64,000 nt of DNA from Sphaerodactylus townsendi (lineage: Eukaryota), in contig NC_059436.1 of assembly GCF_021028975.2 (NCBI RefSeq), positions 25,792,001-25,856,000 on the forward strand, written 5' to 3'. Below the pieces are notes generated by a model that saw nothing but the letters and a program-made list of their open reading frames with translations, had not been told where the DNA came from and searched no databases. The position numbers and the translations under genes are program-made. Below, one piece after another: positions 21,340 through 56,081 of this stretch. Numbering within the stretch: the stretch's first letter is position 1; each line of letters begins with the position of its first letter.

Positions 21340-23900
21340 TTGTTCAGCGGACGAGAGTCGCCTCCGGGCGCGAGAGGGCCTCGCAAGGACTCCAGGCGGC
21401 GCACGAAAGACTTTGTCCGTGGCGCGGGCCCTTTGCCGATCGCCCGGAGGGACGAGGCTGCGAGGCGATGCTGCTGCTGCGACCAGGAGGGCCCGGGAGG
21501 CGTCGGCCTGCCTGGGCGCGAAGGCCTGCTGCCCTGCCCCTGCCCGGCCAGGCGGCGGAGCGCACTGGCGCGGGGCGGGGGGGGAAAGAGGCGGCGGCGG
21601 CGTGTGTGTGTGCGGGGGGGCGGGGTGGATGGGGCGGGCAAGGCGCGCCTGACTCTGCAGGGCCGGGCCGGGACAGCCAGCCCCCTGGCCGCCTCGCTGG
21701 GTCGCTGCCGGGCCGGCTCGCTTGTCTCCGCCCCCGGGCCGGTGGGGGCTACTGCAGGGGGCGGGCCGGGCAGCGCGGCGCGGCGCGGCTACTTGAGCGG
21801 TGGCGGCGGAGCAGGAGCGCGACCGGGCAGCCGGCTGCCAGCACTGCGGCGGGGGCCGGGATCCAGGGCGGCCATGGCCGGAGGCTGGCTCGGGGCGGCC
21901 TTGCTGGGTAAGTGGGGGGCCAGGGGGAGCCGGTCGGGTAAGTCTCGCTGCGGGCGGCGGCTGCGCGGGCGACTCGGGCAGGGCCAGGCGCAGAGGCGGC
22001 CCTGGAGACTTCTGACGGGCCAGCCGCAGCGCCTGAGAGGTGGGCCGAGGAGAAACTCTGCACATGCTCGCTGTCCCTGCTGCTAGCGGGGTGGGAGGCT
22101 GGGGCAGACAGCCCCCGAGAGGCAGCGCCGCTGGACTGGAGGAGGCTTCGGGAACGACTGCTGCGCCGGCTCCGCCAGAGAGGCGTGCCCAGCCCGGCCC
22201 CGGGGCCTGCCTTGCTGCGACTCGGGGGTCCCTCTCCTCACCCGGCCCCTGGGAAGACCGCCCGCTGCTCTCTCCCGGCCTCCCCGGGAGGTCCCAGAAA
22301 CCCTCTGAGAGCAGCGGTTCTTCCCACAGAGAAGGGACCCCGGTCGCGTCTCCATGCCGGCATCTGCGGTGTTCAGAGTAGCCGGCGAGGCCGCTGCCAG
22401 TCCGAGCGGGAGGGAGAGGCCGGCCTCTCGGGCCCGGGGGATCCTGGCTCGGCAGAGGGGAGCTTCACCTGTCCTGCCTCTGAGTGAGAACCTGCTGAAG
22501 GAAGGAAGGCGCCAGGCGAGGCCGAAGCAGGTGCCCGGCGGTGGCTCCCTCTCCCTCTGCGAAGGGGGTTAAGGGGGGGAGGTTAGCCGAGGGGGAGGGG
22601 AGGGGAGGGGGAGGAGGGTCCGGCGCCTGCCCGCTTCTGTCCCGCCGAGGCTCTCCGGTTTCCAGCGCGCCCCAAGGGATCTTTGTGGTCCTTCGCGTTT
22701 CGCTTTCTCCTTCCAAGACCGCGAGGCGGGTGAAGCCGAGAAGAGCCGTCGTGGAACGTGTGGGGAGAGTCCCCCTTGCTACCCCTGGTCGGACTCGCGG
22801 GGTGGGGGGCGCTGGGGGTGGAGGGGAAGCAAAGGAAGGGGCCACTCCAGGTGACTGTCCCGCTTTGGGAGGATCCGTCCTGGCCCAGCTTGGCACAGTT
22901 CCCCCCCCCGCCGGCCCCAGAGGGCTCTGGCGACTGCTGCGTGCAGTTCTGGGCGGGGCGGGCCCAGATCCGAGCCCCCCCGCCCCCCGGAGAGGGCTCA
23001 GCTGCAGCAGCAGCTCCTTCTTGGAAGGAAAGGGGGGGGGAGCCACCTGCGTACTTGGGTTCATGAGGCGTGCAGCTCCTGGACTGGGGGTGGGTGGGGG
23101 TGAGGCGGGGGGGTCGGGAGGGGGGGATCTGGCTGCCTGGGCCCAGCCAGCCGCGCTTAGGCGGCCCCAGGCACAGCACCCTGGCAGACGGACCTCCGGG
23201 CAGCGAAGGGGGCGCCCTGCCTTGGCCGGAGCGGAAGCTGCCCTGCAACCCTTTCGGCGTGGGGCTGGCCGGCCTGGTTGGCTCCGGGCGCTCCCCGGCC
23301 GCGGCTGGTGCTGGTGCTGGGGGTCACCGGACGCCTCTTCTCTCCCGCTCAGGGCTGGGCCTGTGCTGGGCGCCGCTGGCCTTGGAGGTGTCGGTGGGCA
23401 AGGCGGCCACCATCTTCACGCAGAATGGCTCCGACGTGCTGCTGCCCTGCCACTTCACGGCCTGCATCGGCTTCGAGAACGCCCAGTTCTCCTGGTGGTT
23501 CCAGTCGGCCCAGTGGTTCGAGTCGGACCAGGTGCGCGGCCCCCTCCCTCGCCTCGAGGCAGAGGCCGCCGGGACTAGGGCCTGGGGGAGGGAGGCAGCT
23601 GCCGCCCCTCCGAAAAAGAGACGGCCGGCGGGCGCCGGAGGGCCATTCCTAGCGCCCCAGGCCCAGGCGACGAAGGAAGCGGGTCTGCTGTCCCCTACCC
23701 CGCTTTTGCCTCGGAGGAGAGGCGAGGCTGGTTCGGAGCCCGGCGGCGGCTTTTGGGGAAACGGGGGCCTGTCCCGGGGGATGGGCCGGCAGCAGCTGCA
23801 GTGAAGGCCCAGGCGCGTGCCCCGGGCGGGCCTCCTAACTGTGTGTTCCTTGGCTTCCCTCCCTCCCTCCCTCCCGCCCGCCCACCAGGGAAGTCCTTTG
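21340..23900. promoter_or_regulatory. CpG island / SCN4B promoter and 5' exons
   Basis: Dense CpG and GC boxes around SCN4B exons 1-2. Confidence 0.7.
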
Positions 23901-24848
23901 GAGCCCTGACCTTCCCTGACGGCTCTCCCTCCCCCTCTCCACAGCTGTACACGGGGACGGTGCGCAACAGGAACTCCCGGCCGGTGTGTAAGCTCTGCAA
24001 CCCGCGCGTGCAGCTGCCGGAGGACATCCTCCACAAAGACCGGGAGTACAACCTGTCCATCATCTTGCTGTCTGTGGATTTCAGTGACTCAGGGAAATAC
24101 ACCTGCTTCGTCAAGAACCCCAAGGAGAAGGGGGCCGAGCACAACGCCACCATCACCCTGGCCGTGGTAGTGGAGTGTGAGTACTGGGGGTGGGGGGTGG
24201 GGGGAGGGGCCTTGTGCCCAGCCCAGAAGCTCCCTTGGGCCTGGCTGACCTGAGGTTTCTGGGTGTCCAGTCCTCCTGGCACCTTCTGCCTGACCTTCAC
24301 TGCTGTTATCCCCCCACCTCCTCTGCAGTGGAGAAGGTGGACAAGACGCTGACCAAGATCATCGCAGCCGTGGTGGGCGGTGTCATTGGGCTCCTGGTCC
24401 TCATCCTGGTGGCCAAGAAACTCATCCTGTTCGCTCTCAAGAAGAGGAAGGAGAAGACGTGAGTGGGCGTCCCTGGCCGAGAGAGCTCTCTCCTGCCGCC
24501 CCAACCTGCCCCTGAGCAGCACAGGTGGCCACTGGGAGGGAGGTGCTGCTAGGCCTTCCCAAAGTGGAGCAGGGCAGAGGGCTGGTTGGGTTCATCAGAG
24601 ACAGCCATGACACCCTCTGGGTGGCTTCAGCACATGAAACTTCTTTGCCAGGGCAGGGGCGAGGGAGGCTGCTCGGCCAGTCTTGTGGGAGAAGGTGTGG
24701 CCTGTGGCCTATGGCCGTGGCCAGCCAGCCTCTTCTCTGCTCCTCTGTCCACAGCAACGAGTGTCTTGTGAGCTCCTCAGGAAATGACAACACTGAAAAT
24801 GGGCTGGCCGGTTCCAAAGCAGACCAGAAATCTGCTCCCAAGGCCTGA
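21874..24848 (+). CDS. SCN4B: Voltage-gated sodium channel beta-4 subunit, about 222 aa; exons 21874-21907, 23353-23531, 23945-24176, 24329-24458, 24755-24848
   Basis: MAGGWLGAALLG / LEVSVGKAATIFTQNGSDVLLPCHFTACIGFE / DFSDSGKYTCFVKNPKE..HNATITL / LEKVDKTLTKIIAAVVGGVIGLLVLILVAKKLILFALKKRKEK / NECLVSSSGNDNTENGLAGSKA. Splice sites are canonical and phases consistent. Confidence 0.95.

Positions 24849-28018: not shown

Positions 28019-28067
<49 letters not shown>
28019..28067. repeat. (CT)n microsatellite
   Basis: Perfect CT dinucleotide run. Confidence 0.95.
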
Positions 28068-28070
<3 letters not shown>

Positions 28071-28134
28071 CTGGCCAGGCCTGAGTGGGGCTGCATCAGA
28101 TGCAGCAGAGCACAGGAGAGAACAGCACCGACCC

Positions 28135-28276
28135 TCCTGACAGCTCAAACAGGCCTGGACTTTGGTGCAGACGCCAAGGTAGGGGAGCTCCCCCAGCCTT
28201 GGCCTTGACTGACCATGCCCACCATTCACCAGTAGCCTCTCTCTCTTGTGCCCTGCGGGGCTCTTCTGCTGTCTGC
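28135..28276 (-). pseudogene. TMPRSS4: Decayed catalytic-serine exon of a trypsin-like protease; TMPRSS4 remnant by synteny
   Basis: A minus-strand acceptor (ctgtctccctctccag) is followed by ADSRRAPQGTRERGYW*MVGMVSQGQGWGSSPT and, after a frameshift, LGVCTKVQACLS. This corresponds to GDSGGPL..W.VVGIVSWG.GCG..TPGVYTKVSAYL. In-frame TGA at 28228-28226. Position between SCN4B and SMIM35 on the opposite strand matches TMPRSS4. Confidence 0.8.
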
Positions 28277-31200
28277 CTGGAGAGGGAGACAGCGTGGCAC
28301 AGGGGAGGGGTGGAGTCAGGCCTGCTGGGCAGTCAGGGAGTCCAAGGATATGTCTGTCCAGCTGCATTTCAAACACCAGGTGCCAAACAAGGGTAACTTG
28401 CTGTACTCCCTTCCCCCTCCACTGCTCCCCCCCCCCAGCTCAGCTAATTGTTCTGGCTCTAAGAGAAGGGGAGCAGGCAGCCCCCACTATCCCTGCAGCA
28501 AAGCAGGCAGAAGCCTCTGCAAAAAGTGTTGGAAGTAGCAATGCCTAATTAATGTGCAAAGGAACTAAGAAGACTCAGCTGGCTGGACAAGTGGTCAGCT
28601 AGAGAGGGCTGTAAGGGTCATGACCTCTTGGTCCTTTTGTGTCACCTCTTGCCTGTCCTTAGAATGACACTCTTGGGTTGAAGGGATTCCTCCTTCTCAG
28701 AAAGGGGGCTCTCCTCCTTCCCTAGCTAGCCAGGCAGCTTACCCTGGTCCCATCTGAACCGTAGTTCCCTAATTAACATTTACCTTTTAATCAGCGTGGC
28801 TGGCATTTATCTGCACTCCTAGCACACTTTGAACAAAAATAACCTCCAGGTCGTCATTGCTGTGGCCAGGAATATGGGGAGCAGCTGCTGGGCGAAACCA
28901 CAAGGGCTGGGGGGCGGGATGCATTTGCAGGCTGGAACCAAGGCTGGGCCTGGCCTCTCAGCCAGATGTGCCAAACATGGAGTCCACAGATCCAGAACAG
29001 AACAGCCTTGGAGAGGGGTAAAGAATGAAGGAGTCCCACACTGTCAGGAGTCTCTTGTGTGTCACAAAGAGTATAATGAAGATCTGTAGCTATCATGTGT
29101 GTCTGGGCCCACATGCGAGAAAGAGGCATCCGGGAATGTAAGGAAGTCCCAACTAAACACAGCAGAAAAGACATGGGGGGGGGGGGGGGGGCTGGCTGGA
29201 GCCCGGCAGCTCGGTCCTGCAAGAGGAACTGGAAATTGCACATTTTTGCTATTCTTTGTTATGAATAAAAAATATCGAGAATTAGCTGACATGATGGCTT
29301 TTTAAAATCTTAAGAATATATTTGAATATGGAAAACTTTGTGTGGTGCTTGGAAGTTATGATCCAGTGAGCCAAGGATGTGAGTCTGATGGGGGGGGAGT
29401 GGGGGGGGTTGGAGATGATTTTGACAACCTCTAAATGTGCGGGGATGAACGAAGAGCCTCCGCAGAACCCTGCTGGAGCAGAGCAGTGCTCCAACGCCTG
29501 GCAGGGCGCCATGAACACAGAAAAATACAGACTGATAGTAATTTTAGAGGTTACATCATAGGTGGAATTATGCAATCACAATACAGGGCCACCAAGGGCC
29601 ATTAAGCGGCTTCTTCCAAGATGAGACTCCAGGTCTTATCTTTGGTGAGGAAACACCTCCAAATGGGGATAGCACAGATGTTTGCCTACTGGCTCTTATG
29701 CATATTCACCTTGACTTATCTGGCTGTTAATGGGTTTTTACAGCATTTAGTGGGGTGAGGTGATTAGGTTATTCTTTAGAGATTTTTTCCCAAAGTAGGA
29801 GGAAATTACTTAACATAACTTTTGCCATCAGCTGTGGTCTCTTCCTGGGTGTGTGTGACAATTACTTGGGGCTCTGTCAAAATGCAGAAGGGGTTTGCCG
29901 GATTCATCTACTGTCTGCATCCTGTTTATCTGGGTCCACCTGTAGCATAACCTAATCTTTTTGTTTCAGGAAGCTTGTGACTTAGACAGTGGTTTCAGGA
30001 ATGCATTTTACAGCAGGAAGGAAAACTTTACAGAAAATCAAAATAAAACCTAAATTCTACTAACATTATATATCTATCAAAACTAAATTAAAAACAAAAT
30101 AATTATTATCTGTCTCTCTGGCTACAACACTCACTGCCTGCGAGCAGCCCAAAGTTTTGTTCTACAGTGTGGTGAATGGTGGGGGGACATTCATGGGGAC
30201 TGCCACCAGCTGGGAGTTCAAATCCTACACCCCAACCCTCCCCCCCTTCCTGGGCTCTCCTGCTGACATTTCCTTGGGCCAGAGAGTCCAGGGACCGGGC
30301 CTGAGAACGCTGCCTGCCTTGTAATCCTGCTGCAGACTCAGCAGTCAAAAAGAAAGGGGGAGGCGACGACGTTGCCGGCAGGTCAGCACTACAGCGGTGG
30401 ATCTTCTACTGCTGGCAGCTTCGGCTGCAGCGCTTGCTGTCAATTTGCCAGCCGCAGCAGATCCTCGGCTGCAGTGCAGAGAAGCAGGCGGGCAGAGGGC
30501 CAAGAAGAGAAGGCTGCTGGTGCATCCCCACCAGAAAGGGCAGAGGCAGGAGGGGGGGAGGTGGCCTCATCTCTCCCCCCCCCCCCCAGTTGCTCTGCTG
30601 CTGCTGCAACCCAGGGAGGAGGAGGGGGGACCCTTCTTTTCTGCTCTGGGGTGGGGAAGGTGTGTAGCCCTTGAAACATCCAAGGCAGGAGGGGAAACTC
30701 CTCCATGCAATCAGGCATGCCTGGGTCAGGGGCCAGAAACAGCTGGAGCCAGAGTGGCGGCAGAAGCAGCGGCAGCGGCGGCAGCAGCCCACTAGTGAAG
30801 GTTGCCCAGACACAGACGGTGGCTGCTGCTGTGGAAAAGCTGCTTGTTGTCTTGCTGGAGCAGGTGCCCAGCCAGGGGAAAGGTGACCTCCCACCCACAA
30901 GGCTGAATGGGGTAAAGGACCCAGGGTACCTGCTGTGTGGGAAAGCTAGGGATGCTGGGAAATGCAGTGCTTGGACTGGGGATCTGGGGTGGGGTTGGTG
31001 GTGGATTGGGGTCACTAACATCTCCTGCCCCCAAAGGAGGGCAGCCTGGTGGTCCCTGCACAGAAGAAGGGATGCTGTTGCAGGGAGGGGAAGAAGAGTG
31101 GCCTCTGCTAGACCCCCCTCCCCTCCACAGCCACGACAGGTGGTGTCTTCCGTGGCTCTTCTGTGCTTGGCTGAGAGGCCTGCTGGGCCCGTGGGGCGGG

Positions 31201-31549
31201 GGGAGGGGCACGGTTCATGGCAGGCTGCTTTACACATGTTCAGCTGCTGGGCTCAGAGGCTACAGCGGCCGCACCTGCCTGCCTGCCTGCCTGCCAGGCC
31301 AGGTCAAAGGGGGCGCGTCCAGGCCCAGGTGGCCCTCTGGCTAACCACTTGCAGTCCAGACTGGTGCCCTTCCCACACCTGCCAGGCGGCTCCCTGCTGG
31401 GGTCAGGGGGAGGCAGCAGGTCCAGGCAGGGCAGCCTGCCAGGGCGGGGGGGGCATTTTTGCCGAGGAGGGGCCAGTGGGCCTCTTTGTCCTGAAAGACC
31501 CACCTGGGGGCTTGGGCTGCAAGGCCAAAGGTCCCCCCGGGCCTTCCCG

Positions 31550-32350
31550 CCCCCTGGCCAGCGCCGAGCAGCGCGCGTCTCTGCGTCGGGCGGGAGACCG
31601 GGGAGCACGGCCCCCCGAGGGCGCTGCTAGGAGACGCCGCCCGCGGACCAGCCCTCCAGGTCCGGCTGTCGCCGCGCCAGCAGCAGCCCGGATCCTCTCG
31701 GTCGCCGTCGCCGGCCGTTCCAGGGAGCCCCGCCCCGCCATGACAGGTAGGCCCGGCTGAGGCTCTCAGACCGCAAAGTGGCGGCCCTCCCTGCAAGGTG
31801 GGCGCCGTACCTGCGAGAAGCGCTGCCGCGGAGAGTCCCTCGAGGAAGCCCCCGCCCGCCCCGACAGTGCCGCTGCGCAGCGAAGAGAGGACGTGTCTGT
31901 GTGATGCACCTTCTGGCGGGCTTCTGCCCAAGCCGTGGCCGGTGGGGGGGCACTCGGTGGGGGGCTCTCAGCCAGGCGAGGGCGGAAGACAGTAGTTGGG
32001 ACTGAGGCGGCCCGGGGGGCTCGGGCTTTGCAGGGCGGGGGCTTGCGAGGAACCGCGCTGCCGCCTAGCTGGAGGTAGGCGGGGCAGTCAGGCCTGCTGC
32101 GCTGGCGGGGAGATTTCCCAGGGCAGGCCCAGGAAGAGCGGCTGGCAGTAGTCGGTCCCCCTGGGGCTGGAGGTCAGCCTGCCTGCCTGCCTGCCTGCCT
32201 GCCACGGAGCCCCGCTGGGAGGGAGCGGGGGCTCCGCTGGAGTTTATGGCACAGAGAAGCGGGCGAAAGGAAGGAAACCGCGTGTTAGCAGCAGGCTGGG
32301 AGGGAGGGCGAGGCCTCCAGGCGCTGCTCTCATGCTAGCGAGGGGGGAGG
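31550..32350. promoter_or_regulatory. CpG island / SMIM35 promoter
   Basis: CpG-rich block containing the SMIM35 ATG micro-exon. Confidence 0.65.
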
Positions 32351-35300
32351 AGGGGGCGTCTCTGCTACTGACTTGACTGCCCAGCAGAAGCAGGAGGAGG
32401 TCAGCCCCGAGAGCGGCGGTAGGCCTTTGACAAGGTGCCCCACAACATCCTCCCAAGCAAGGCTAGACAAGGCTACTGTTAGATGGATTTGTGATTGGTT
32501 GACTGACCAAACCCAAAAGGTGCCCACCAATGGCTCATTGTTATCCTGGAGAGAAGTGACTAGTGGGGTTCTGTCCCGGCCCCAGTGCTATTCAATATTT
32601 TTATCAATTACTTGGATGTTGGAATAGAGGGCATGCCAATCAAATTTGCAAATGATATCAAATTAGGAGTAGCTAATACCCCAGAGGACAGGGTCAGAAT
32701 TCAAAATCACCTGGACAGATTGGAGAACTGGGCCAAAACTAATAAAATGAATGTCACAGAGATAAATGTAAGACACTATAGGTAGGCAGAAAAAATGGTT
32801 TGATAACAGTACACATGAAAGGGATCTGTACATGAGTCAGAAGTGATGCAGCAGCCAAGAAAGCCAATGCAATTCTAGGCTGCATCAATCTGAGTATAGT
32901 GTCCAGACTGAGGGACGTAATAATACCACTCTATTCTGCACTGGTCAGACCTCACCTGGAATACTGTGACCAGTTCCGGGCACTACAATCCAAGAAGATA
33001 TTAACAAGCTGGAACAGGTCCAGGGGAGAGCAACCAAAATGGTCAAAGGTCTGGGATGCATTCCTTGCGAGGAGAGACTTAGGGAGCTGGGGATGTTTAG
33101 TCTGGAAAAGAGAAGGTTAAGGTGTGACATGATAGCCATGCTTAGATATCTGAAGGGATGTCATGTTGAAGAGGGAGCAAGCTTGTTTTCTGCTGCTCCA
33201 GAGACCAGAACCAGGACAAATGGATTCAAGGTCCAGGAAAAGAGATTCCACCTAATCATCAGGAAAAACTTCCTGAGGGTCAGGGCTGTTTGACAGTGGG
33301 ATGCTCTACCTCGGAGAGTGGCGGAGTCTCCTTCTCTGGAGGCTTTTGAGCAGGGGCTGGATGGCCGTCTGTCAGGAGTGCTCTGACTGTGTGTTCCGCA
33401 TGGCCAGGGAGTGGGCTTGATGGCCCGGTGGTCTCTTCCAGCTCCATGATTCTACACGTAGTTCCTAATAAACATTTACCTTTTACCCTTCTAATCAGAG
33501 TGTTAGCTGCTTCTCTGTGTAGTGAAATCCAACAAGGAGTTGGGGGGAGGTCCCCAGGCAGAAGTGCGTGGTGCCTGCTTGTCTTGCAACACAGGAAGCT
33601 TCCCTGCAGAGTGGCCCCGGAGGACGCAGGCTGGTGCCGTGGCATCGGAGTGTGCCAGCTGGCTTATGCAACAGCGACTTCTGATTCCCAGCAAGGGAAG
33701 CAGGGAGAAGCTCTGGCGGGCAGGGCTCCGAGGGGCAATGGTTGCCAGGAAGCCCGGAGTGCTCTGGGGCCCAGGCTCTGCTGCGGCATCTTTCCCCGGC
33801 TTTCCGTCTTCAAGAGGGCCCCCTCCTGGCACCGGCCTCCCTTTCCTGGTGGCCTTTTAGTGGGTTCTGTTTTTAGGCTATTACCAGGCTGAGCAGCACA
33901 TGATCTCCTGGTTGTCCTTATGCCTGGATTGCAGGGGGCCAATAGGGAGGGGGCCCTGCTTCCAGCTCCCTCTGGATTCACAGTGGAGGAGAGCCAGTGC
34001 AGTGCCCCTGCTCGCCCCAAGGGGATCTCTGGGATCTTCCACGACACAAACTGAATAGAACCTCCATGCTCAAAGGGAATATTTCTGGAATGCCAGATCC
34101 TGGGGTGAGGCGGGTGGCGGGTGGGGGGGACGGAGAGAGAGAGAAAGAGAGAGGGAGAGAATTAATGCTTTTCCTGGATGTGAGTTGTGGCAGAACCTGA
34201 TGGGCCTGCCAGGCTGGGTTAATTGTTTATAACATTTAAAACTTGTGTTGGGGTGACAGGCAGGACATGGCCCATGCCTGCCTGCCAGGTTCTTTCCCAC
34301 CTCCCTTGATTGGCCTTTGTCTGGCTGCCCGCCCTCCCACGTCATCTCAGCGCCGCCGGTGGTGAAGACGAGACTGCTGGGCCCTTTCCTCTGGCCCCTG
34401 ACGTCAGATGGCCTCAGCCCAGCCAGGCAGTTGTGGAGGAGGCCCTGTAGAAAAGGACCCGTCTGTCCTAGGCCCCACCCAGCGTGGTGTTGTGTTTAGG
34501 AGCAGGTGGGCCCTCGTCTGGAGAACTGAGTCTGATCCCCACTCCTCCAGGTGGGGGACGGGGGACAGAGAGGGGCTTTTGGGCATGGGCTATGCAGAGG
34601 CCCCCTAAATCTGGAATCGGCCCTGCAGTTGACTATTCATGTGTTCCATTTTCCCATGAGTTTAAGAAAAAACACCCTTAAAAAAAAGAAAACACTCATG
34701 CAGGGGAGGAGGCTGCACTACCTGCTGAGAAATGTGGGCAAAGTTTGACCCAGCTGGTTTTCTCCAAGTGGGCCAGAAGGTTGGTGGTTGGTTCATTGGA
34801 CTGGTGGCCCCTTCTGGGTCACGCTCAGACTTGGCCCACCGCCTGGTCAGATTTGTGTGCATGGCGGGGCGTGCCTGCTTCTGTGGCCTGGCATCCAGGT
34901 GCAGAGTGAGTGTGAGGACGCTGCATTCCCCACCTGGGCGCACCCAGGCAAGGTCAACAGCTGCGGGTCACCCTGGCGTGTTCTGCTGATGCAGCAGTGG
35001 TGCTGCGTGCAGGGCCGGCTCCTTTTCTGTGCCTCTGCATTAGTATTCCTCCTGATCCCAGCAAAACTGATTTTGGAACATCAGCATTAAGGCCATTTCC
35101 ACCGGTGATGCTGCAATGAATTTTTTATTTCCTGTGTTTGTAGTCGTGATTTTAAAAGGGCTCTCTCTGACCTTCCCTTTGGCACGGAGGGTGTGCAGGA
35201 GCGAGGGACTGCCCAGGCAGGACTCCTGGCCAGCAGCGAAGGAAACAGGGCGGCCTGGGTGTGCTCCTGCAGCGCCACAAAGGATGAGGGGTGGGGGAAA

Positions 35301-38189
35301 GGGCTGGGAAGGGGCCGAGCCATGCTCAGGTCTTAGGAGGAAGCTGGATAGGGAAAATCCTGGTGGCAAGCCATAGGAGCTAGTAGTGAGCTCCATGTGA
35401 CCTGTGCCCTGGAGCATGTGAACAAACTGTGACAATGAGAGGCAAGGTTACTTCAGAACATGTGCAAAGTGCCCTTTCATTCCATGGGAACCCAGGATTA
35501 AAGGGGAGCCTCTCTCCCAGGGAGCTTTAGAGTAACTTCTGTTCCCCTGAGTCTGCTGGTTGGGAAGGGGTGTGCCTATCATCATGACCCTTGTCTGGCT
35601 CTGGGAGTGTGAAGGGGAGCTGGGGGGCTCAGCGCCTGCCCCCAGCCGGGGCCTGGAGGAGGAGTTTGTCATCCCAAGCAAAGGACATCCAGAGAGGGTC
35701 CATCGGGTCCAGCGTCCTGCTACGTGCAGTGACCAACCACTTCCTCAGGAGGTCCAACCAACAGCGCAGAGAGTCCGAGGTCTTCCCCCAAGGTGGCCTC
35801 CTGGCCCTCAGACTCAGCAATTTGGTGCCTCTGAATGTTGGAGGTTCCCTGCAGTCACCGGGGCTAGACCCTTCTTCCAAGAATCTGCCACTCTTAAAGC
35901 TGTCTTGGCAATCACTACCTTCTCTGGCCGCATTTTGACCACTTGTTAAGAAGCATATCCCTTTGTCCACCCTGAATCAACTGCCGACTAACTTTATTGC
36001 ACGCCCTCAAGGTTTTTGGGATTTAGAGAGAGGGAGAGAAGACGTTCAGTGCCTCCCTCTCCGCCTCATGCATGATTTTATAAACCTTTTGCCTACCCCC
36101 GACCCCCAACTGTCATTTCTCTACCCTGCTGCAATGCTCAAGACTCTCCAGCCCTTTCGTCACAGGGAAGGTGCTTCAACCGCTTGGCCATCTCGGTTGC
36201 CTTCCTCTGTCCTGTTTCCATCTTTATTTTTGGGCAGGAGGCAGGGCAAAGGCCACAGAGGACTGCCTGCTCACTGCCCTGCAGATGGCTCACCCCAGGG
36301 CACCAGCCCTCCTCCCCCCTCTCCCAAGATGGGTCAGCCTCAGGGGGGCGGGGCGGGGAGTGGGCACTGCCTGGGACTCCGCCCGTAGCCTGCAGGGGCT
36401 CCCTGAGGAAACACGTGATCTTGAGGTTCATATTTAAAACGTTTGTCCCTTCCTTGCCTTTGAGCCAATATAAGCCCCAAAGGTGGCTAATAAATAATAG
36501 TTAATCTGTATTTTATGTATTTGAGCTGTTTACATCCCATCTTTTCCATTAGCCAAAGGGCACTTACAGCCGTGAGCACGATGCCCACACAGTTAAAAAA
36601 GCATCGCATGAAAATACAGGATGGAACCATGGACCCAGCAAAACCAACACAGACACAAAGGAACTTTTAAAAGAGCAAGCATTAAACCATTAACAATGAA
36701 ACAGTCAAAGCTAACAAATGCTCATCACAAGGTCAGACTCAGAGATGTAGATCAGGCACAGAGTTGGGATTTTGGGCTCTTTACAGGGGAAGCCCAAAGG
36801 CTCTGTGGAAGGGGACCCTTTTCTCAGGTGCCATCAAGTGGATTCCAATTTAGAGCAACCCAGTGAATCAATGTCCTTCAAAATGGACAGTTTTTATTGG
36901 GCAGCAAAATGCAGTCAAGAAGGGGCGAGGTGGGCAGGGAGTGTCCTACCTGGCCTGGGTGCTGCTATCCTAAAGGGCCATTCTTGAGCAGCAGGCAGGC
37001 AGGCAGGCAGGCAGGCAGGAGTGGTGCTGAGAGGCAGTGGCACCCAGTGGAGGCCTGGGAGGCAGGTTAGTGTGCTGGGGAAGGGTGACCACGGAGGACT
37101 TTCCAGGCTACCATCAGGGCTTGAGATGGGGTTCAGGCCAGGGCCAGACTGGCACAGAACAGGCTCACCTCAGTTAACCCGTGGGATGCTGTGGTCTGTC
37201 GCTTCCAGACATTCTCCCAAGGCAACCCCGCAAGGAGTCTGCCAAGCCATGGCCTCTTGTCATGAGCCAGTGCGGCGTGGGGGTTGGGGATCTGGGTGAA
37301 GATCTGAAAGGCCCTGGTTCAAATCCCTGCTGTGCCCTGAGGCTTGCTGGGTGATCTTGCCCCAGTTATACTCTTGGCCGAACCTGCTTCACAGGGTTGT
37401 TGTGAGCATAAAACTGCAGAGGTCAGAACCAACACCCACCACTCCGAGCAGGTCCTTGGAAGAAGAGTGAGATTAAAACGAACTCAACGGGTCATGCCCA
37501 GAATAGCATATTCCATTTGGCCAGGAGCCGGAAGCGCCTTCGTCGGCCTCCAGGTTTTCTCCAGAAGAGGGAATTCAGCCGACAGGGCGTGGAGTTGTGC
37601 AGACTATCCTCAACAGGCCTCACAGCTCCTGGGATCTCAGCCTCCTCTCCAAGATGCGGAGGCAGGGAAATACTCACAAACACGTCCAATGCACACGGTC
37701 TGCTCTGGGTGCGTTTCTTTTTCACACCTGTATCCAAAGGGGCCAGCACTGGCAACAGGTGCGTTTTCAGGCCTTAGACTTAATGGGTCGTGGTGTGGGG
37801 GAAAACGCTGCATGTTCCGTCAGTGTTGGCAGAACAGCATTTCTCCTCCTGGCTGGGCTCCAACCTCCGTCTTGTCTCTCATTTCAGGAAAGGAACCCAC
37901 CAGCTTCCTTGGTCTGGTGCTGGGCCTCAGCCTCTCCCTCTTCATCTTGGGTATCCTTGGCTATGCCTTGGCTAGGTGGTGTCGGGAAGGACCGTTCTGG
38001 CACAGTAAGTCCGCACAGACAGACTCCCTCCCTACTGGGGGCCAATCAGGATTCTTTTGAATCTTAACTTTGCACAGCTGGTACGCAGTTTGAGGCAGAC
38101 CACACAATGCCTTGAGTGACTTGTTTAGAATAGTTGGCTTGCCTTCCCCACAGACTGCTTCTTTACAAAAGAAAGAAAGAAAGAAAGAA

Positions 38190-38225
<36 letters not shown>

Positions 38226-39983
38226 AGGAAAGAAAGAAAGAAAGAAAGAAAGAAAGAGAGCTCGAACAGGCTCAGAACGGTACGGGAGCCCCCTCCTTCT
38301 CCCCCCAAGTAGTCTTCTCATGTGAAAACTGTGCTGGGATGCAGTTATTTTGCCATCGCTGCCCCATGTGTGCAGATACTCCACACAGTGTAGCAAGGCT
38401 GGTAAAATAACCTCCCTCATGAGAAGACTGGGGCGGGGGGGGGGGGGGGCCAGGAACTCTTCCGTCCCTCCCCTGGCACTGTTCCAAGCCCACTGGGGAT
38501 TTTGCAAGCGTCTGTCACAACTCAGTAATAAAAGGGTTAACTGTTCGTATGAAGTCACTGTTTAAGACCTGAACTACTGGTTAGCTATTGGTCAGTCAGA
38601 TAGCCTTTGCTTACATGTTAGTGAGCACCTACATCTGAAGTTATAAAGTTGACTCTGTTTCTTTGTTTGAGCAGACACGACACCAGCCCCACCACGAGCA
38701 CAAGGCAGCAGACAGGTACCCAGATGTAGCCAAACGTGCCGTCATGTAGACGTGGAACAGGAAAGAAAGGATTTGACTTTTTTGTAGAGAAGCAGTTTGT
38801 GGGGCCGCAGTTAACACTGGCAAAGAGGTGTAGATGAGCGAAGAAGGGGCCTTTTGGGTCCCTTTGCCTGCAAGTGAGGCCCTTTCTGCTGGGCTGGACA
38901 GTTCCCTCAGCCAGGGTACTACAGAGTGAGGAGTAGACCAGGGCTCAGAGTAGAGGCCAGGCAGAGACAGGTGTTAAGAGTCCGACATGGACTTCTGATC
39001 AGAGATGCTCTATGGGTTTTGTGCTTGAAACTTCAGTCCCAGGGGCGTGGGGCCTGATTAGGGCTGCAACCTGCTAAAATTGGCCATGGGAGGGAGGGGC
39101 CTTGAGCTCCCAACTCCCCCCCCCCCAACACTGCCTCCCGAACTTGAACAACCCTGAGAAGTCCCAGCCCTACACATCTGGGATTCTCCAGCAGGGAAAA
39201 CAGCAATGCCATGGGGCTGTTTCGGGGAGGAAAATGATGCGTATGTGGGGGGAAGGTTAGTAGGCTGAATCCCTCTCTCCCGGCGTGCAACAATCCCAGT
39301 TTGACTTGGGCCCCCAAACCCCTGGGAATGGAGTCCCAAGCATGAGAGTCACAAGGTACATCTGACCCAACCTGCTTGCACTGGGACTGGAGTGCCGACG
39401 CTGTGATTTGTCTCGGCAGGGAAAAGGGGAAGAGGCTGCGGAAAAGATGAGATTGCTGCAGTTCAAGCCCTGGGCATGCAGAGGCAAGGGAGGCCAGAGA
39501 GCGGAGTGCCAATGAAGGGAGATATCCCTGGGGGCCTCCTCAAGCCTGTGGAGAGTGAGGGGGGCCAAGCCTCTTCCCTCCAGTGCTGGCCTCCAGCCAC
39601 GCCATTCCCCATGGCCACGCACCCTGCTCCTCCTCGTCTCTCATGGCCCTGTCTCCCTTTCCCCTTCCAGGGCCATATTTTGTCTTCAACCTCTACCACA
39701 TCCGGTGAGTACACCCACCCCCTCCCTTGAGGCTGGAGCTCCTGCCAAGGGGAGGCTTCCATCTTGCCTCTGCTGCTCTGGTCAGGCAGAGGGAGAGCAG
39801 ACCAGAGAGGCAACCAGCCGCCGGCCTGCCCACAGGGTATCCCCATTGGCACAGGCGCACGCACGGTGTGCAGGGAATTCTTCCTGTTGTGTCCCCTTCA
39901 GCAACCTGAGGTCGGTGGAGCTAGAGGTGCTCCCCCCCTTCACCATCAGTGGCTCAATGTGTGATTCCAGCGCAGCCCCATGA
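31740..39983 (+). CDS. SMIM35: Small integral membrane protein 35, 79 aa; exons 31740-31746, 37888-38004, 39671-39704, 39902-39983
   Basis: cccgccATGACAG|gtagg micro-exon in a CpG island. Spliced product [79 protein letters not shown] matches SMIM35 motifs ([27 protein letters not shown]). The gene is not seen as one ORF in the track. Confidence 0.92.
32420..33455 (+). mobile_element. 5'-truncated, degenerate CR1 LINE (RT C-terminal region and 3' UTR)
   Basis: [55 protein letters not shown], and a 3' end cttccagctccatgattcta. Confidence 0.9.
33885..34410 (-). promoter_or_regulatory. Putative orphan TMPRSS4 promoter and first exon, antisense within SMIM35 intron 1
   Basis: Ordered on the minus strand: CRE TGACGTCA 34399-34406, GC box about 34327-34334, CCAAT 34313-34309, p53/p63-like CATG half-sites 34263-34280, and TATAAA about 34231-34226 overlapping an HNF1-like GGTTAAT. 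Downstream lies ...GGAGATCA..TCAGCCTG|GTAA (donor at 33884), resembling the ATG|GT end of human TMPRSS4 exon 1 as I remember it. Confidence 0.5.
37255..37490 (+). mobile_element. Old tRNA-derived SINE
   Basis: B-box-like ggttcaaatccc, then gctgggtgatcttg and cacagggttgttgtgag core. Confidence 0.6.
38167..38256. repeat. (AAAG)n microsatellite
   Basis: Long AAAG tetranucleotide run in SMIM35 intron 2. Confidence 0.95.
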
Positions 39984-40596
39984 AGGAGGCAGGTAGGACT
40001 GAGCTCCAGCTGCACGTGTCCCCCCCCCCCCCGCACCTCTTCTTTCCCCATGAGGCTGGGATGCCAGCAGCGTCTCCTCTGGCGAGGGTCTCCTTCTCCC
40101 CCTAGGCCAAGGAAGGAGCAGCCATAGGGAAGGGGTGAAGCCATTTGGGCAGGTGGCTTGAGGAGTCCCTTCACCGCTGGTTTCCCAACCCACATAGCTG
40201 CCCAGTCCCACCGGTGTGTGCATGGGACTGTCTTCCACCAGACTGTCTTCCACCAGAGGTGGCATTCCACCTGACACGGCCCCAGACAAGGGGGAGGGCA
40301 CTGCTGGGCATCATGCAACAGAGCCTCTGATTGGGCCTGGTGAGAAAGGGGCAACCCCCCCCCCCCCCCCCCCGGGAACCCTTTTCTGTCTTTCCAGCCT
40401 CCTTTCCTTGGAGCAGGTGGGCGCCAGTCAGCAAAGTCTTCAGCACCTGAGAGATCGACGCATCAGTTGTGGCACCAACGTCCCCAAACTGCCGATCCCA
40501 TCATCGGAGGCGTGAAACGTTGGGTTAAATCTCCAGTTAGGTTTCTATTTAAATATTTATTTATGTATCTTTACTACATGTACCTTCATTCATGGG

Positions 40597-55889: not shown

Positions 55890-56081
55890 NNNNNNNNNNN
55901 NNNNNNNNNNNNNNNNNNNNNNNNNNNNNNNNNNNNNNNNNNNNNNNNNNNNNNNNNNNNNNNNNNNNNNNNNNNNNNNNNNNNNNNNNNNNNNNNNNNN
56001 NNNNNNNNNNNNNNNNNNNNNNNNNNNNNNNNNNNNNNNNNNNNNNNNNNNNNNNNNNNNNNNNNNNNNNNNNNNNNNNNN
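55890..56081. other. Assembly gap (192 N)
   Basis: Run of N bases. Confidence 1.

Follow-up and report, generated by a model that had tools for sequence, protein, structure and literature searches.

TMPRSS4 (CAP2) activates the epithelial sodium channel ENaC in vitro, and research on virus entry has dealt with it as a cofactor. Mice that lack Tmprss4 are viable and fertile, and their ENaC-mediated sodium transport and balance are normal (PMC4550455); the kidney handles water defectively in them only when potassium is depleted (PMC6925205). Because this phenotype is mild, loss of the gene without dramatic consequence is plausible. Losses of this kind are represented by the unitary pseudogenes catalogued in primates (PMC2864566), in which a functional single-copy gene decayed in place and which are recognized through synteny with intact orthologs together with disabling mutations. 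The same description appears to fit a locus in the gecko Sphaerodactylus townsendi. We analyzed a window of 64,000 nucleotides (nt) of contig NC_059436.1, in whose coordinates all positions below are given unless stated otherwise. A stretch downstream of SCN4B, from 28276 to 28133 on the minus strand, is very probably the only recognizable remnant of S. townsendi TMPRSS4, an unprocessed pseudogene at the ancestral locus that encodes no protease. With one exon left, it is far more eroded than is usual for the catalogued unitary pseudogenes. Searches of the literature found nothing that links TMPRSS4 to geckos or squamates; matches to "gecko" concerned the GeCKO CRISPR library.

A Putative TMPRSS4 Relic Next to SCN4B

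An intact gene for comparison was reached through synteny: in Podarcis raffonei, the gene that lies downstream of SCN4B on the opposite strand encodes a protein of 436 amino acids with SRCR_2 and Trypsin domains. One exon of this gene retrieved proteins named TMPRSS4 by NCBI from Podarcis, Salvator, Pogona, Tiliqua, and birds. In both Podarcis species, P. raffonei and P. lilfordi, TMPRSS4 is arranged tail-to-tail with SCN4B (loci L002 and L005) at a distance of 6.7 kb. The relic of S. townsendi lies 3.3 kb past the stop codon of SCN4B and on the strand opposite to it. It thus shares slot and orientation with Podarcis TMPRSS4 (P0024; L005 10001-32719), and the gene on the far side is in both cases that of a 101-amino-acid protein. 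Podarcis TMPRSS4 spans 22.7 kb and has at least 11 coding exons, whereas S. townsendi has a single broken exon in an interval of 9.5 kb.

The relic (28133 to 28276, minus strand, 144 nt) corresponds to the last protease-domain exon, which in lizards extends from GDSGGP to YTILR; the assignment draws on blastn, tblastn, a codon alignment, and a translation read through the breaks. In blastn, the P. raffonei exon with ∼15 nt of its preceding intron matched 28151 to 28291 at 68.5% identity over 146 nt (E = 2.6e-12; runner-up 28 bits). TMPRSS4 of P. lilfordi matched the relic with E = 1.2e-10, and with E = 9.6e-14 when the search was restricted to the slot (runner-up 24 bits). Identity to the exon in the two species was 68-69% over 131-146 nt. 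An earlier note on this DNA, which had proposed a collapsed TMPRSS4 here from the letters alone, named a significant alignment at this position beforehand as a test, and these E values provide one. It had also suggested a tblastn search with a reptile TMPRSS4; the top match of the Podarcis exon peptide in the window is the relic (E = 0.004), and another piece of the peptide matches collinearly in a shifted frame. Full-length TMPRSS4 queries in tblastn at default settings (E ≤ 0.05) missed the relic, which was recovered only with exon-sized queries or relaxed settings.

The homology continues beyond the exon, whose boundaries are the same as in Podarcis TMPRSS4. The 3′ end of the preceding intron (28277 to 28291, minus strand) aligns with the Podarcis intron end, and a pyrimidine-rich tract leads to the acceptor AG at 28278-28277, where the note had placed it. 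At the other end the donor GT (28131 to 28132, minus strand) is kept in the sequence GTCGGT, aligned to GTCAGT in Podarcis. Intron boundaries retained at the ancestral locus are what is expected of an unprocessed pseudogene.

We also translated the relic across its three breaks, with X placed at each, and aligned this read-through with nine TMPRSS4 orthologs. Scores ranged from 67 to 94, relative to 29 ± 5 for shuffled sequences (z of 8-13), and every one of the nine alignments fell at the correct C-terminal position. The alternative that a GC-rich stretch resembles protease motifs by chance draws on the many weak spurious tblastn matches that GC-rich DNA of the window yields, and on the isolated pieces, for which neither the three stop-free pieces searched against Pfam nor the two searched against PDB gave a match. 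Such nulls are expected of pieces of 16-26 residues and, because the pieces are too short, are not evidence against homology. Given blastn E values of 1e-10 to 1e-13 with runners-up of 24-28 bits, the read-through scores, and a strand, position, and splice sites that all agree with expectation, chance resemblance is refuted and its probability practically negligible.

A second alternative is that the relic derives from another S1 protease, as a fragment of a paralog such as TMPRSS13 or as a retrocopy. The exon is among the best conserved regions across all S1 proteases, and its protein sequence is much alike among them, which counts against the assignment to TMPRSS4. So does the basis on which paralogs are set aside, namely synteny, intron-flank homology, and TMPRSS4-typical residues, with no DNA of lizard TMPRSS13 or another paralog in the comparison. 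Yet the residues GCGS..T and KVQA are common to the relic and sauropsid TMPRSS4 and do not occur in TMPRSS11D or kallikrein. Read-through scores also drop with phylogenetic distance among TMPRSS4 orthologs, from 80-94 for squamates to 67-72 for bird and mammal, and the relic is placed relative to SCN4B as the Podarcis exon is. The retained donor and the homology that extends into the intron end speak against a retrocopy in particular. We consider an origin from another S1 protease highly improbable.

Because the sequence match is joined by position and orientation next to SCN4B, the stretch from 28276 to 28133 is, as judged from these comparisons, the ortholog of the exon with which the protease domain of lizard TMPRSS4 ends. 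The coding sequence does not end with this exon, because in lizards a terminal exon of three codons (TES or SES, then stop) comes after it. This terminal exon was not recognizable at its expected site in the window, where the alignment is unreliable. A (CT)25 microsatellite occupies that site, at 28019 to 28068, immediately downstream of the relic.

Disabling Lesions in the Relic

Read on the minus strand from 28276, frame 1 gives ADSRRAPQGTRERGYW, a stop codon, and then MVGMVSQGQGWGSSPT; LGVCTKVQACL follows in a shifted frame. These translations, including the stop, reproduce those of the earlier note. Its pairing of ADSRRAP with GDSGGP holds as to the degraded motif, but ADSRRA is the residue-for-residue match and the P belongs to the next codon. 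In the codon alignment, GGA GAC AGC GGA GGG CCA corresponds to GCA GAC AGC AGA AGA GCC (28259 to 28276, minus strand), so that four of the six motif residues are replaced and the catalytic Ser codon AGC, which the note had passed over, is retained. The loop following GDSGGP differs by 6 nt in length, in frame.

Further lesions follow along the exon, all on the minus strand. A premature TGA stop at 28226 to 28228 stands where Podarcis has CAC (His). Within SWG.GCG, the Trp codon has become CAA (28205 to 28207) and the conserved Cys has changed from TGC to TGG, encoding Trp (28193 to 28195). A 1-nt deletion at about 28179 to 28180, supported by the alignment and by the reading frames, shifts the frame between GCGSPS and PGVYTKV. 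The stop and this deletion had been proposed as one stop and one indel, and the count of indels proved too low: an 11-nt deletion at about 28140 to 28141 causes a second frameshift and removes most of the NWIYT codons. A functional S1 protease would have an intact GDSGGP and an open frame. The relic has neither, and of the sites of the catalytic triad it keeps the Ser codon alone; to judge from its sequence, it is incapable of encoding a protease.

Correctness of the Sequence

The lesions do not trace to a slip in the assembly. As had been claimed, there is no assembly gap in the TMPRSS4 slot: it holds no run of N, and the sole run of the window is at 55890 to 56081. A public record of the same assembly (GCA_021028975.2, CM037625.2) is equal to 11874 to 34848 of the window and hence is not an independent check. 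The sequence was checked in contigs that span the relic, from runs of four organisms coded A to D; the best run may derive from the sample of the assembly itself. Organisms A and B showed no difference across 28090 to 28316 or further. Organisms C and D are near-identical to the window over the relic. Organism D has at least two substitutions. In organism C there are at least five substitutions in the relic, of at least eight over 28090 to 28613 (524 nt). Its five relic substitutions, at 28138, 28163, 28180, 28210, and 28238, each replace a plus-strand T with G or C. None of the differences listed for the four runs falls on the TGA stop. The disabling mutations are present and are not an assembly slip, and the way in which the differences of organism C cluster within the relic speaks against its being under purifying selection. 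No run listed as holding the stretch is on record as RNA.

Fate of the Other Exons

The remainder of the TMPRSS4 slot, from 28292 to 37837, contains much interspersed repeat, and no further exon was detectable in it by tblastn, blastn, depth profile, or open reading frames. Queries were database proteins at full length and Podarcis exons one at a time, without a spliced model. In tblastn with five full-length TMPRSS4 proteins, we found no TM (transmembrane), LDLa, SRCR, His, Asp, or other protease exon in this interval, and blastn with the whole Podarcis gene and with each of its exons singly gave no other credible match. The view that the gene has collapsed, with its other exons beyond recognition, therefore stands for these queries. 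A six-frame scan of the whole window likewise revealed no intact S1 motif (TAAHC, DIAL) in a protease context. The Podarcis promoter and exon-1 region had no match at 33885 to 34410 and a best E of 0.052 at 35174 to 35196 in the slot, a weak test given an exon 1 of ∼12 residues and the evolutionary distance.

Several candidates were rejected as non-collinear chance matches in GC-rich or low-complexity DNA. They comprise a PWQAAL candidate at 31427 to 31554 (E about 1), a candidate for Podarcis exon 4 at 31272 to 31361 (E = 0.002), a His-exon candidate at 35319 to 35348 (E = 0.005), and exon candidates at 33554 to 33802 and 39916 to 40066. Tetranucleotide repeats at 31274 to 31295 and 32177 to 32203 lie inside two of the rejected candidates.

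The slot, from 28133 to ∼37837, compares with ∼31.5 kb for the corresponding distance in Podarcis. The other exons would have been removed by deletion or have decayed past recognition, since the relic and the next gene are now just 9.5 kb apart, with repeats taking up part of this shrunken interval. The conserved His and Asp exons were most likely deleted. For the stem exons (TM, LDLa, SRCR), whose conservation is lower, deletion is not distinguishable from decay beyond recognition.

In each of the four runs, contig depth exceeded background by a factor of hundreds to thousands at 28490 to 28689, 29490 to 30289, and 32290 to 33689, and because of this very high depth much of the slot is taken to be interspersed repeat. 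Within the last of these intervals, at about 32373 to 33300 on the plus strand, are open reading frame fragments resembling reverse transcriptase, which we presume to be CR1-like. Both strands of a GC-rich block at 30300 to 32200 (∼63% GC) carry long open frames. The block is unmatched in the Podarcis loci and those of the other geckos, diverges with many gaps in organisms C and D, and resembles neutral GC-rich DNA more than a gene.

Probable Loss of TMPRSS4 in Other Geckos

The absence of an annotated gene is common to the gecko loci. The annotation of the S. townsendi assembly calls no gene over the 10 kb that follow SCN4B, as had been anticipated in the prediction that annotation would miss the relic; with just one exon left, protein-based annotation is blind to it. 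The same is true of the 10 kb past SCN4B in Eublepharis macularius, Heteronotia binoei, and Gekko kuhli. The gecko intervals could be aligned with one another only as far as the conserved 3′ region of SCN4B, whose end lies at ∼27497 of the window.

A solitary relic of another exon is present in G. kuhli, 3.5 kb downstream of SCN4B (L004 17834-17989, minus strand; tblastn E = 3e-11, blastn E = 4e-14). As in S. townsendi, it is a lone exon with splice sites kept and a premature stop, here from CAA to TAG, and no gene is called; it carries a 6-nt in-frame deletion and no frameshift. Unlike the relic of S. townsendi, it is the Asp exon (amino acids 248-296 of the Podarcis protein). The exon that survives in S. 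townsendi was undetectable in G. kuhli, as were all three protease exons expected between the Asp-exon relic and SCN4B.

Proteins give the same pattern. Among the best 120 homologs of Podarcis TMPRSS4, all at least 49% identical, there is no gecko protein, and SCN4B of six geckos is present in the same database. The 120 come from ten non-gecko squamates, turtles, an alligator, birds, and mammals; unnamed Logan proteins on the list cluster with birds or mammals in a tree. This bears on the alternative that a functional TMPRSS4 resides at another locus of S. townsendi following translocation or duplication, with the relic as the abandoned old copy. Such a copy could have escaped a search that covered annotated proteins, but no protein of S. 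townsendi or any gecko is among these homologs, despite the six gecko protein sets in the database. We regard a functional copy elsewhere as improbable.

Snake proteins are also absent from the best 120, and Anolis, Pogona, and Elgaria are represented. Snakes, too, may be without the gene; alternatively, their TMPRSS4 may evolve so fast that it falls short of the cut-off.

The proposal of an old, lineage-specific loss gains support from the gecko loci and the absence of gecko proteins, and extends to geckos other than S. townsendi. On the evidence of the loci of four geckos and the protein sets of six, TMPRSS4 may have been inactive already early in gecko evolution and would have no function now. 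Later deletions would then have left different lone exons by lineage, the last protease exon in Sphaerodactylus and the Asp exon in G. kuhli. The account that we infer on grounds of parsimony is one early loss, with further deletions in separate lineages. For the stronger statement of a single loss in the stem of Gekkota, which would leave the whole clade without TMPRSS4, we see an even chance.

Several points weigh against these readings. The two gecko relics are different exons, hence no shared lesion proves one ancestral loss. The gecko loci examined extend just 10 kb past SCN4B. "Unitary" status in S. townsendi was judged via annotated proteins only. Finally, it is among the listed differences only that the stop and frameshifts can be judged common to organisms C and D, which falls short of strict proof.

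Independent and more recent losses in several gecko lineages, in place of one stem loss, would account for the different surviving exons of Sphaerodactylus and G. kuhli and for the lack of a lesion in common. They would also agree with relics that keep their splice sites and are 66-69% identical to Podarcis DNA, when functional SCN4B exons are 71-75% identical. However, four of four geckos, from three families, are without an intact gene at the locus, no gecko protein was found, and parsimony favors a single loss over three or four. Excess divergence, put roughly at 10-13%, is compatible with about 60 to 200 million years. Independent losses are possible but somewhat unlikely. The age of the loss is poorly constrained, because divergence of the relic from Podarcis (∼31%) is only modestly above that of functional SCN4B exons (25-29%).

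Gekkota comprise roughly two thousand lizard species. If TMPRSS4 was lost in their stem, they would be natural knockouts in which to study what the gene contributes to the handling of sodium, potassium, and water and how it affects the susceptibility of epithelia to viruses that depend on proteases; a clade-wide natural loss would fit the dispensability seen in mice. Snakes may then represent a second loss, perhaps an independent one. This raises the comparative question of whether other channel-activating proteases compensate in geckos, or whether epithelial protease-dependent processes are altered. The significance is modest in that this is a new example of a well-known type of event; such losses occur often, and this one comes with no striking phenotype. 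The gene remains were found solely by synteny-guided comparison of DNA, where protein annotation and family scans show nothing.

Neighboring Genes

On the far side of the slot, the first-exon region of a small protein with a single transmembrane segment lies at 37838 to 38013 on the plus strand. It matches the 101-amino-acid gene upstream of Podarcis TMPRSS4 in blastn (70% over 176 nt, E = 8e-22). This upstream neighbor is presumably SMIM35, and the protein had no Pfam match.

The tail-to-tail neighbor downstream of the relic is SCN4B, whose coding exons 2-5 occupy 23376 to 24848 on the plus strand and end in a stop codon at 24846-24848. The exon at 23945 to 24169 is 100% identical to an S. 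townsendi SCN4B entry, and blastn matches Podarcis SCN4B. SCN2B lies at about 15.3-15.7 kb on the plus strand, the same strand as SCN4B. The SCN4B gene is compact, with exons 2-5 within 1.5 kb. When exon 3 was used as query, coverage was 37% by the RefSeq isoform X1 (P0023, 236 amino acids) and full by the UniRef entry (189 amino acids), which suggests that gene models differ for SCN4B exon 3.

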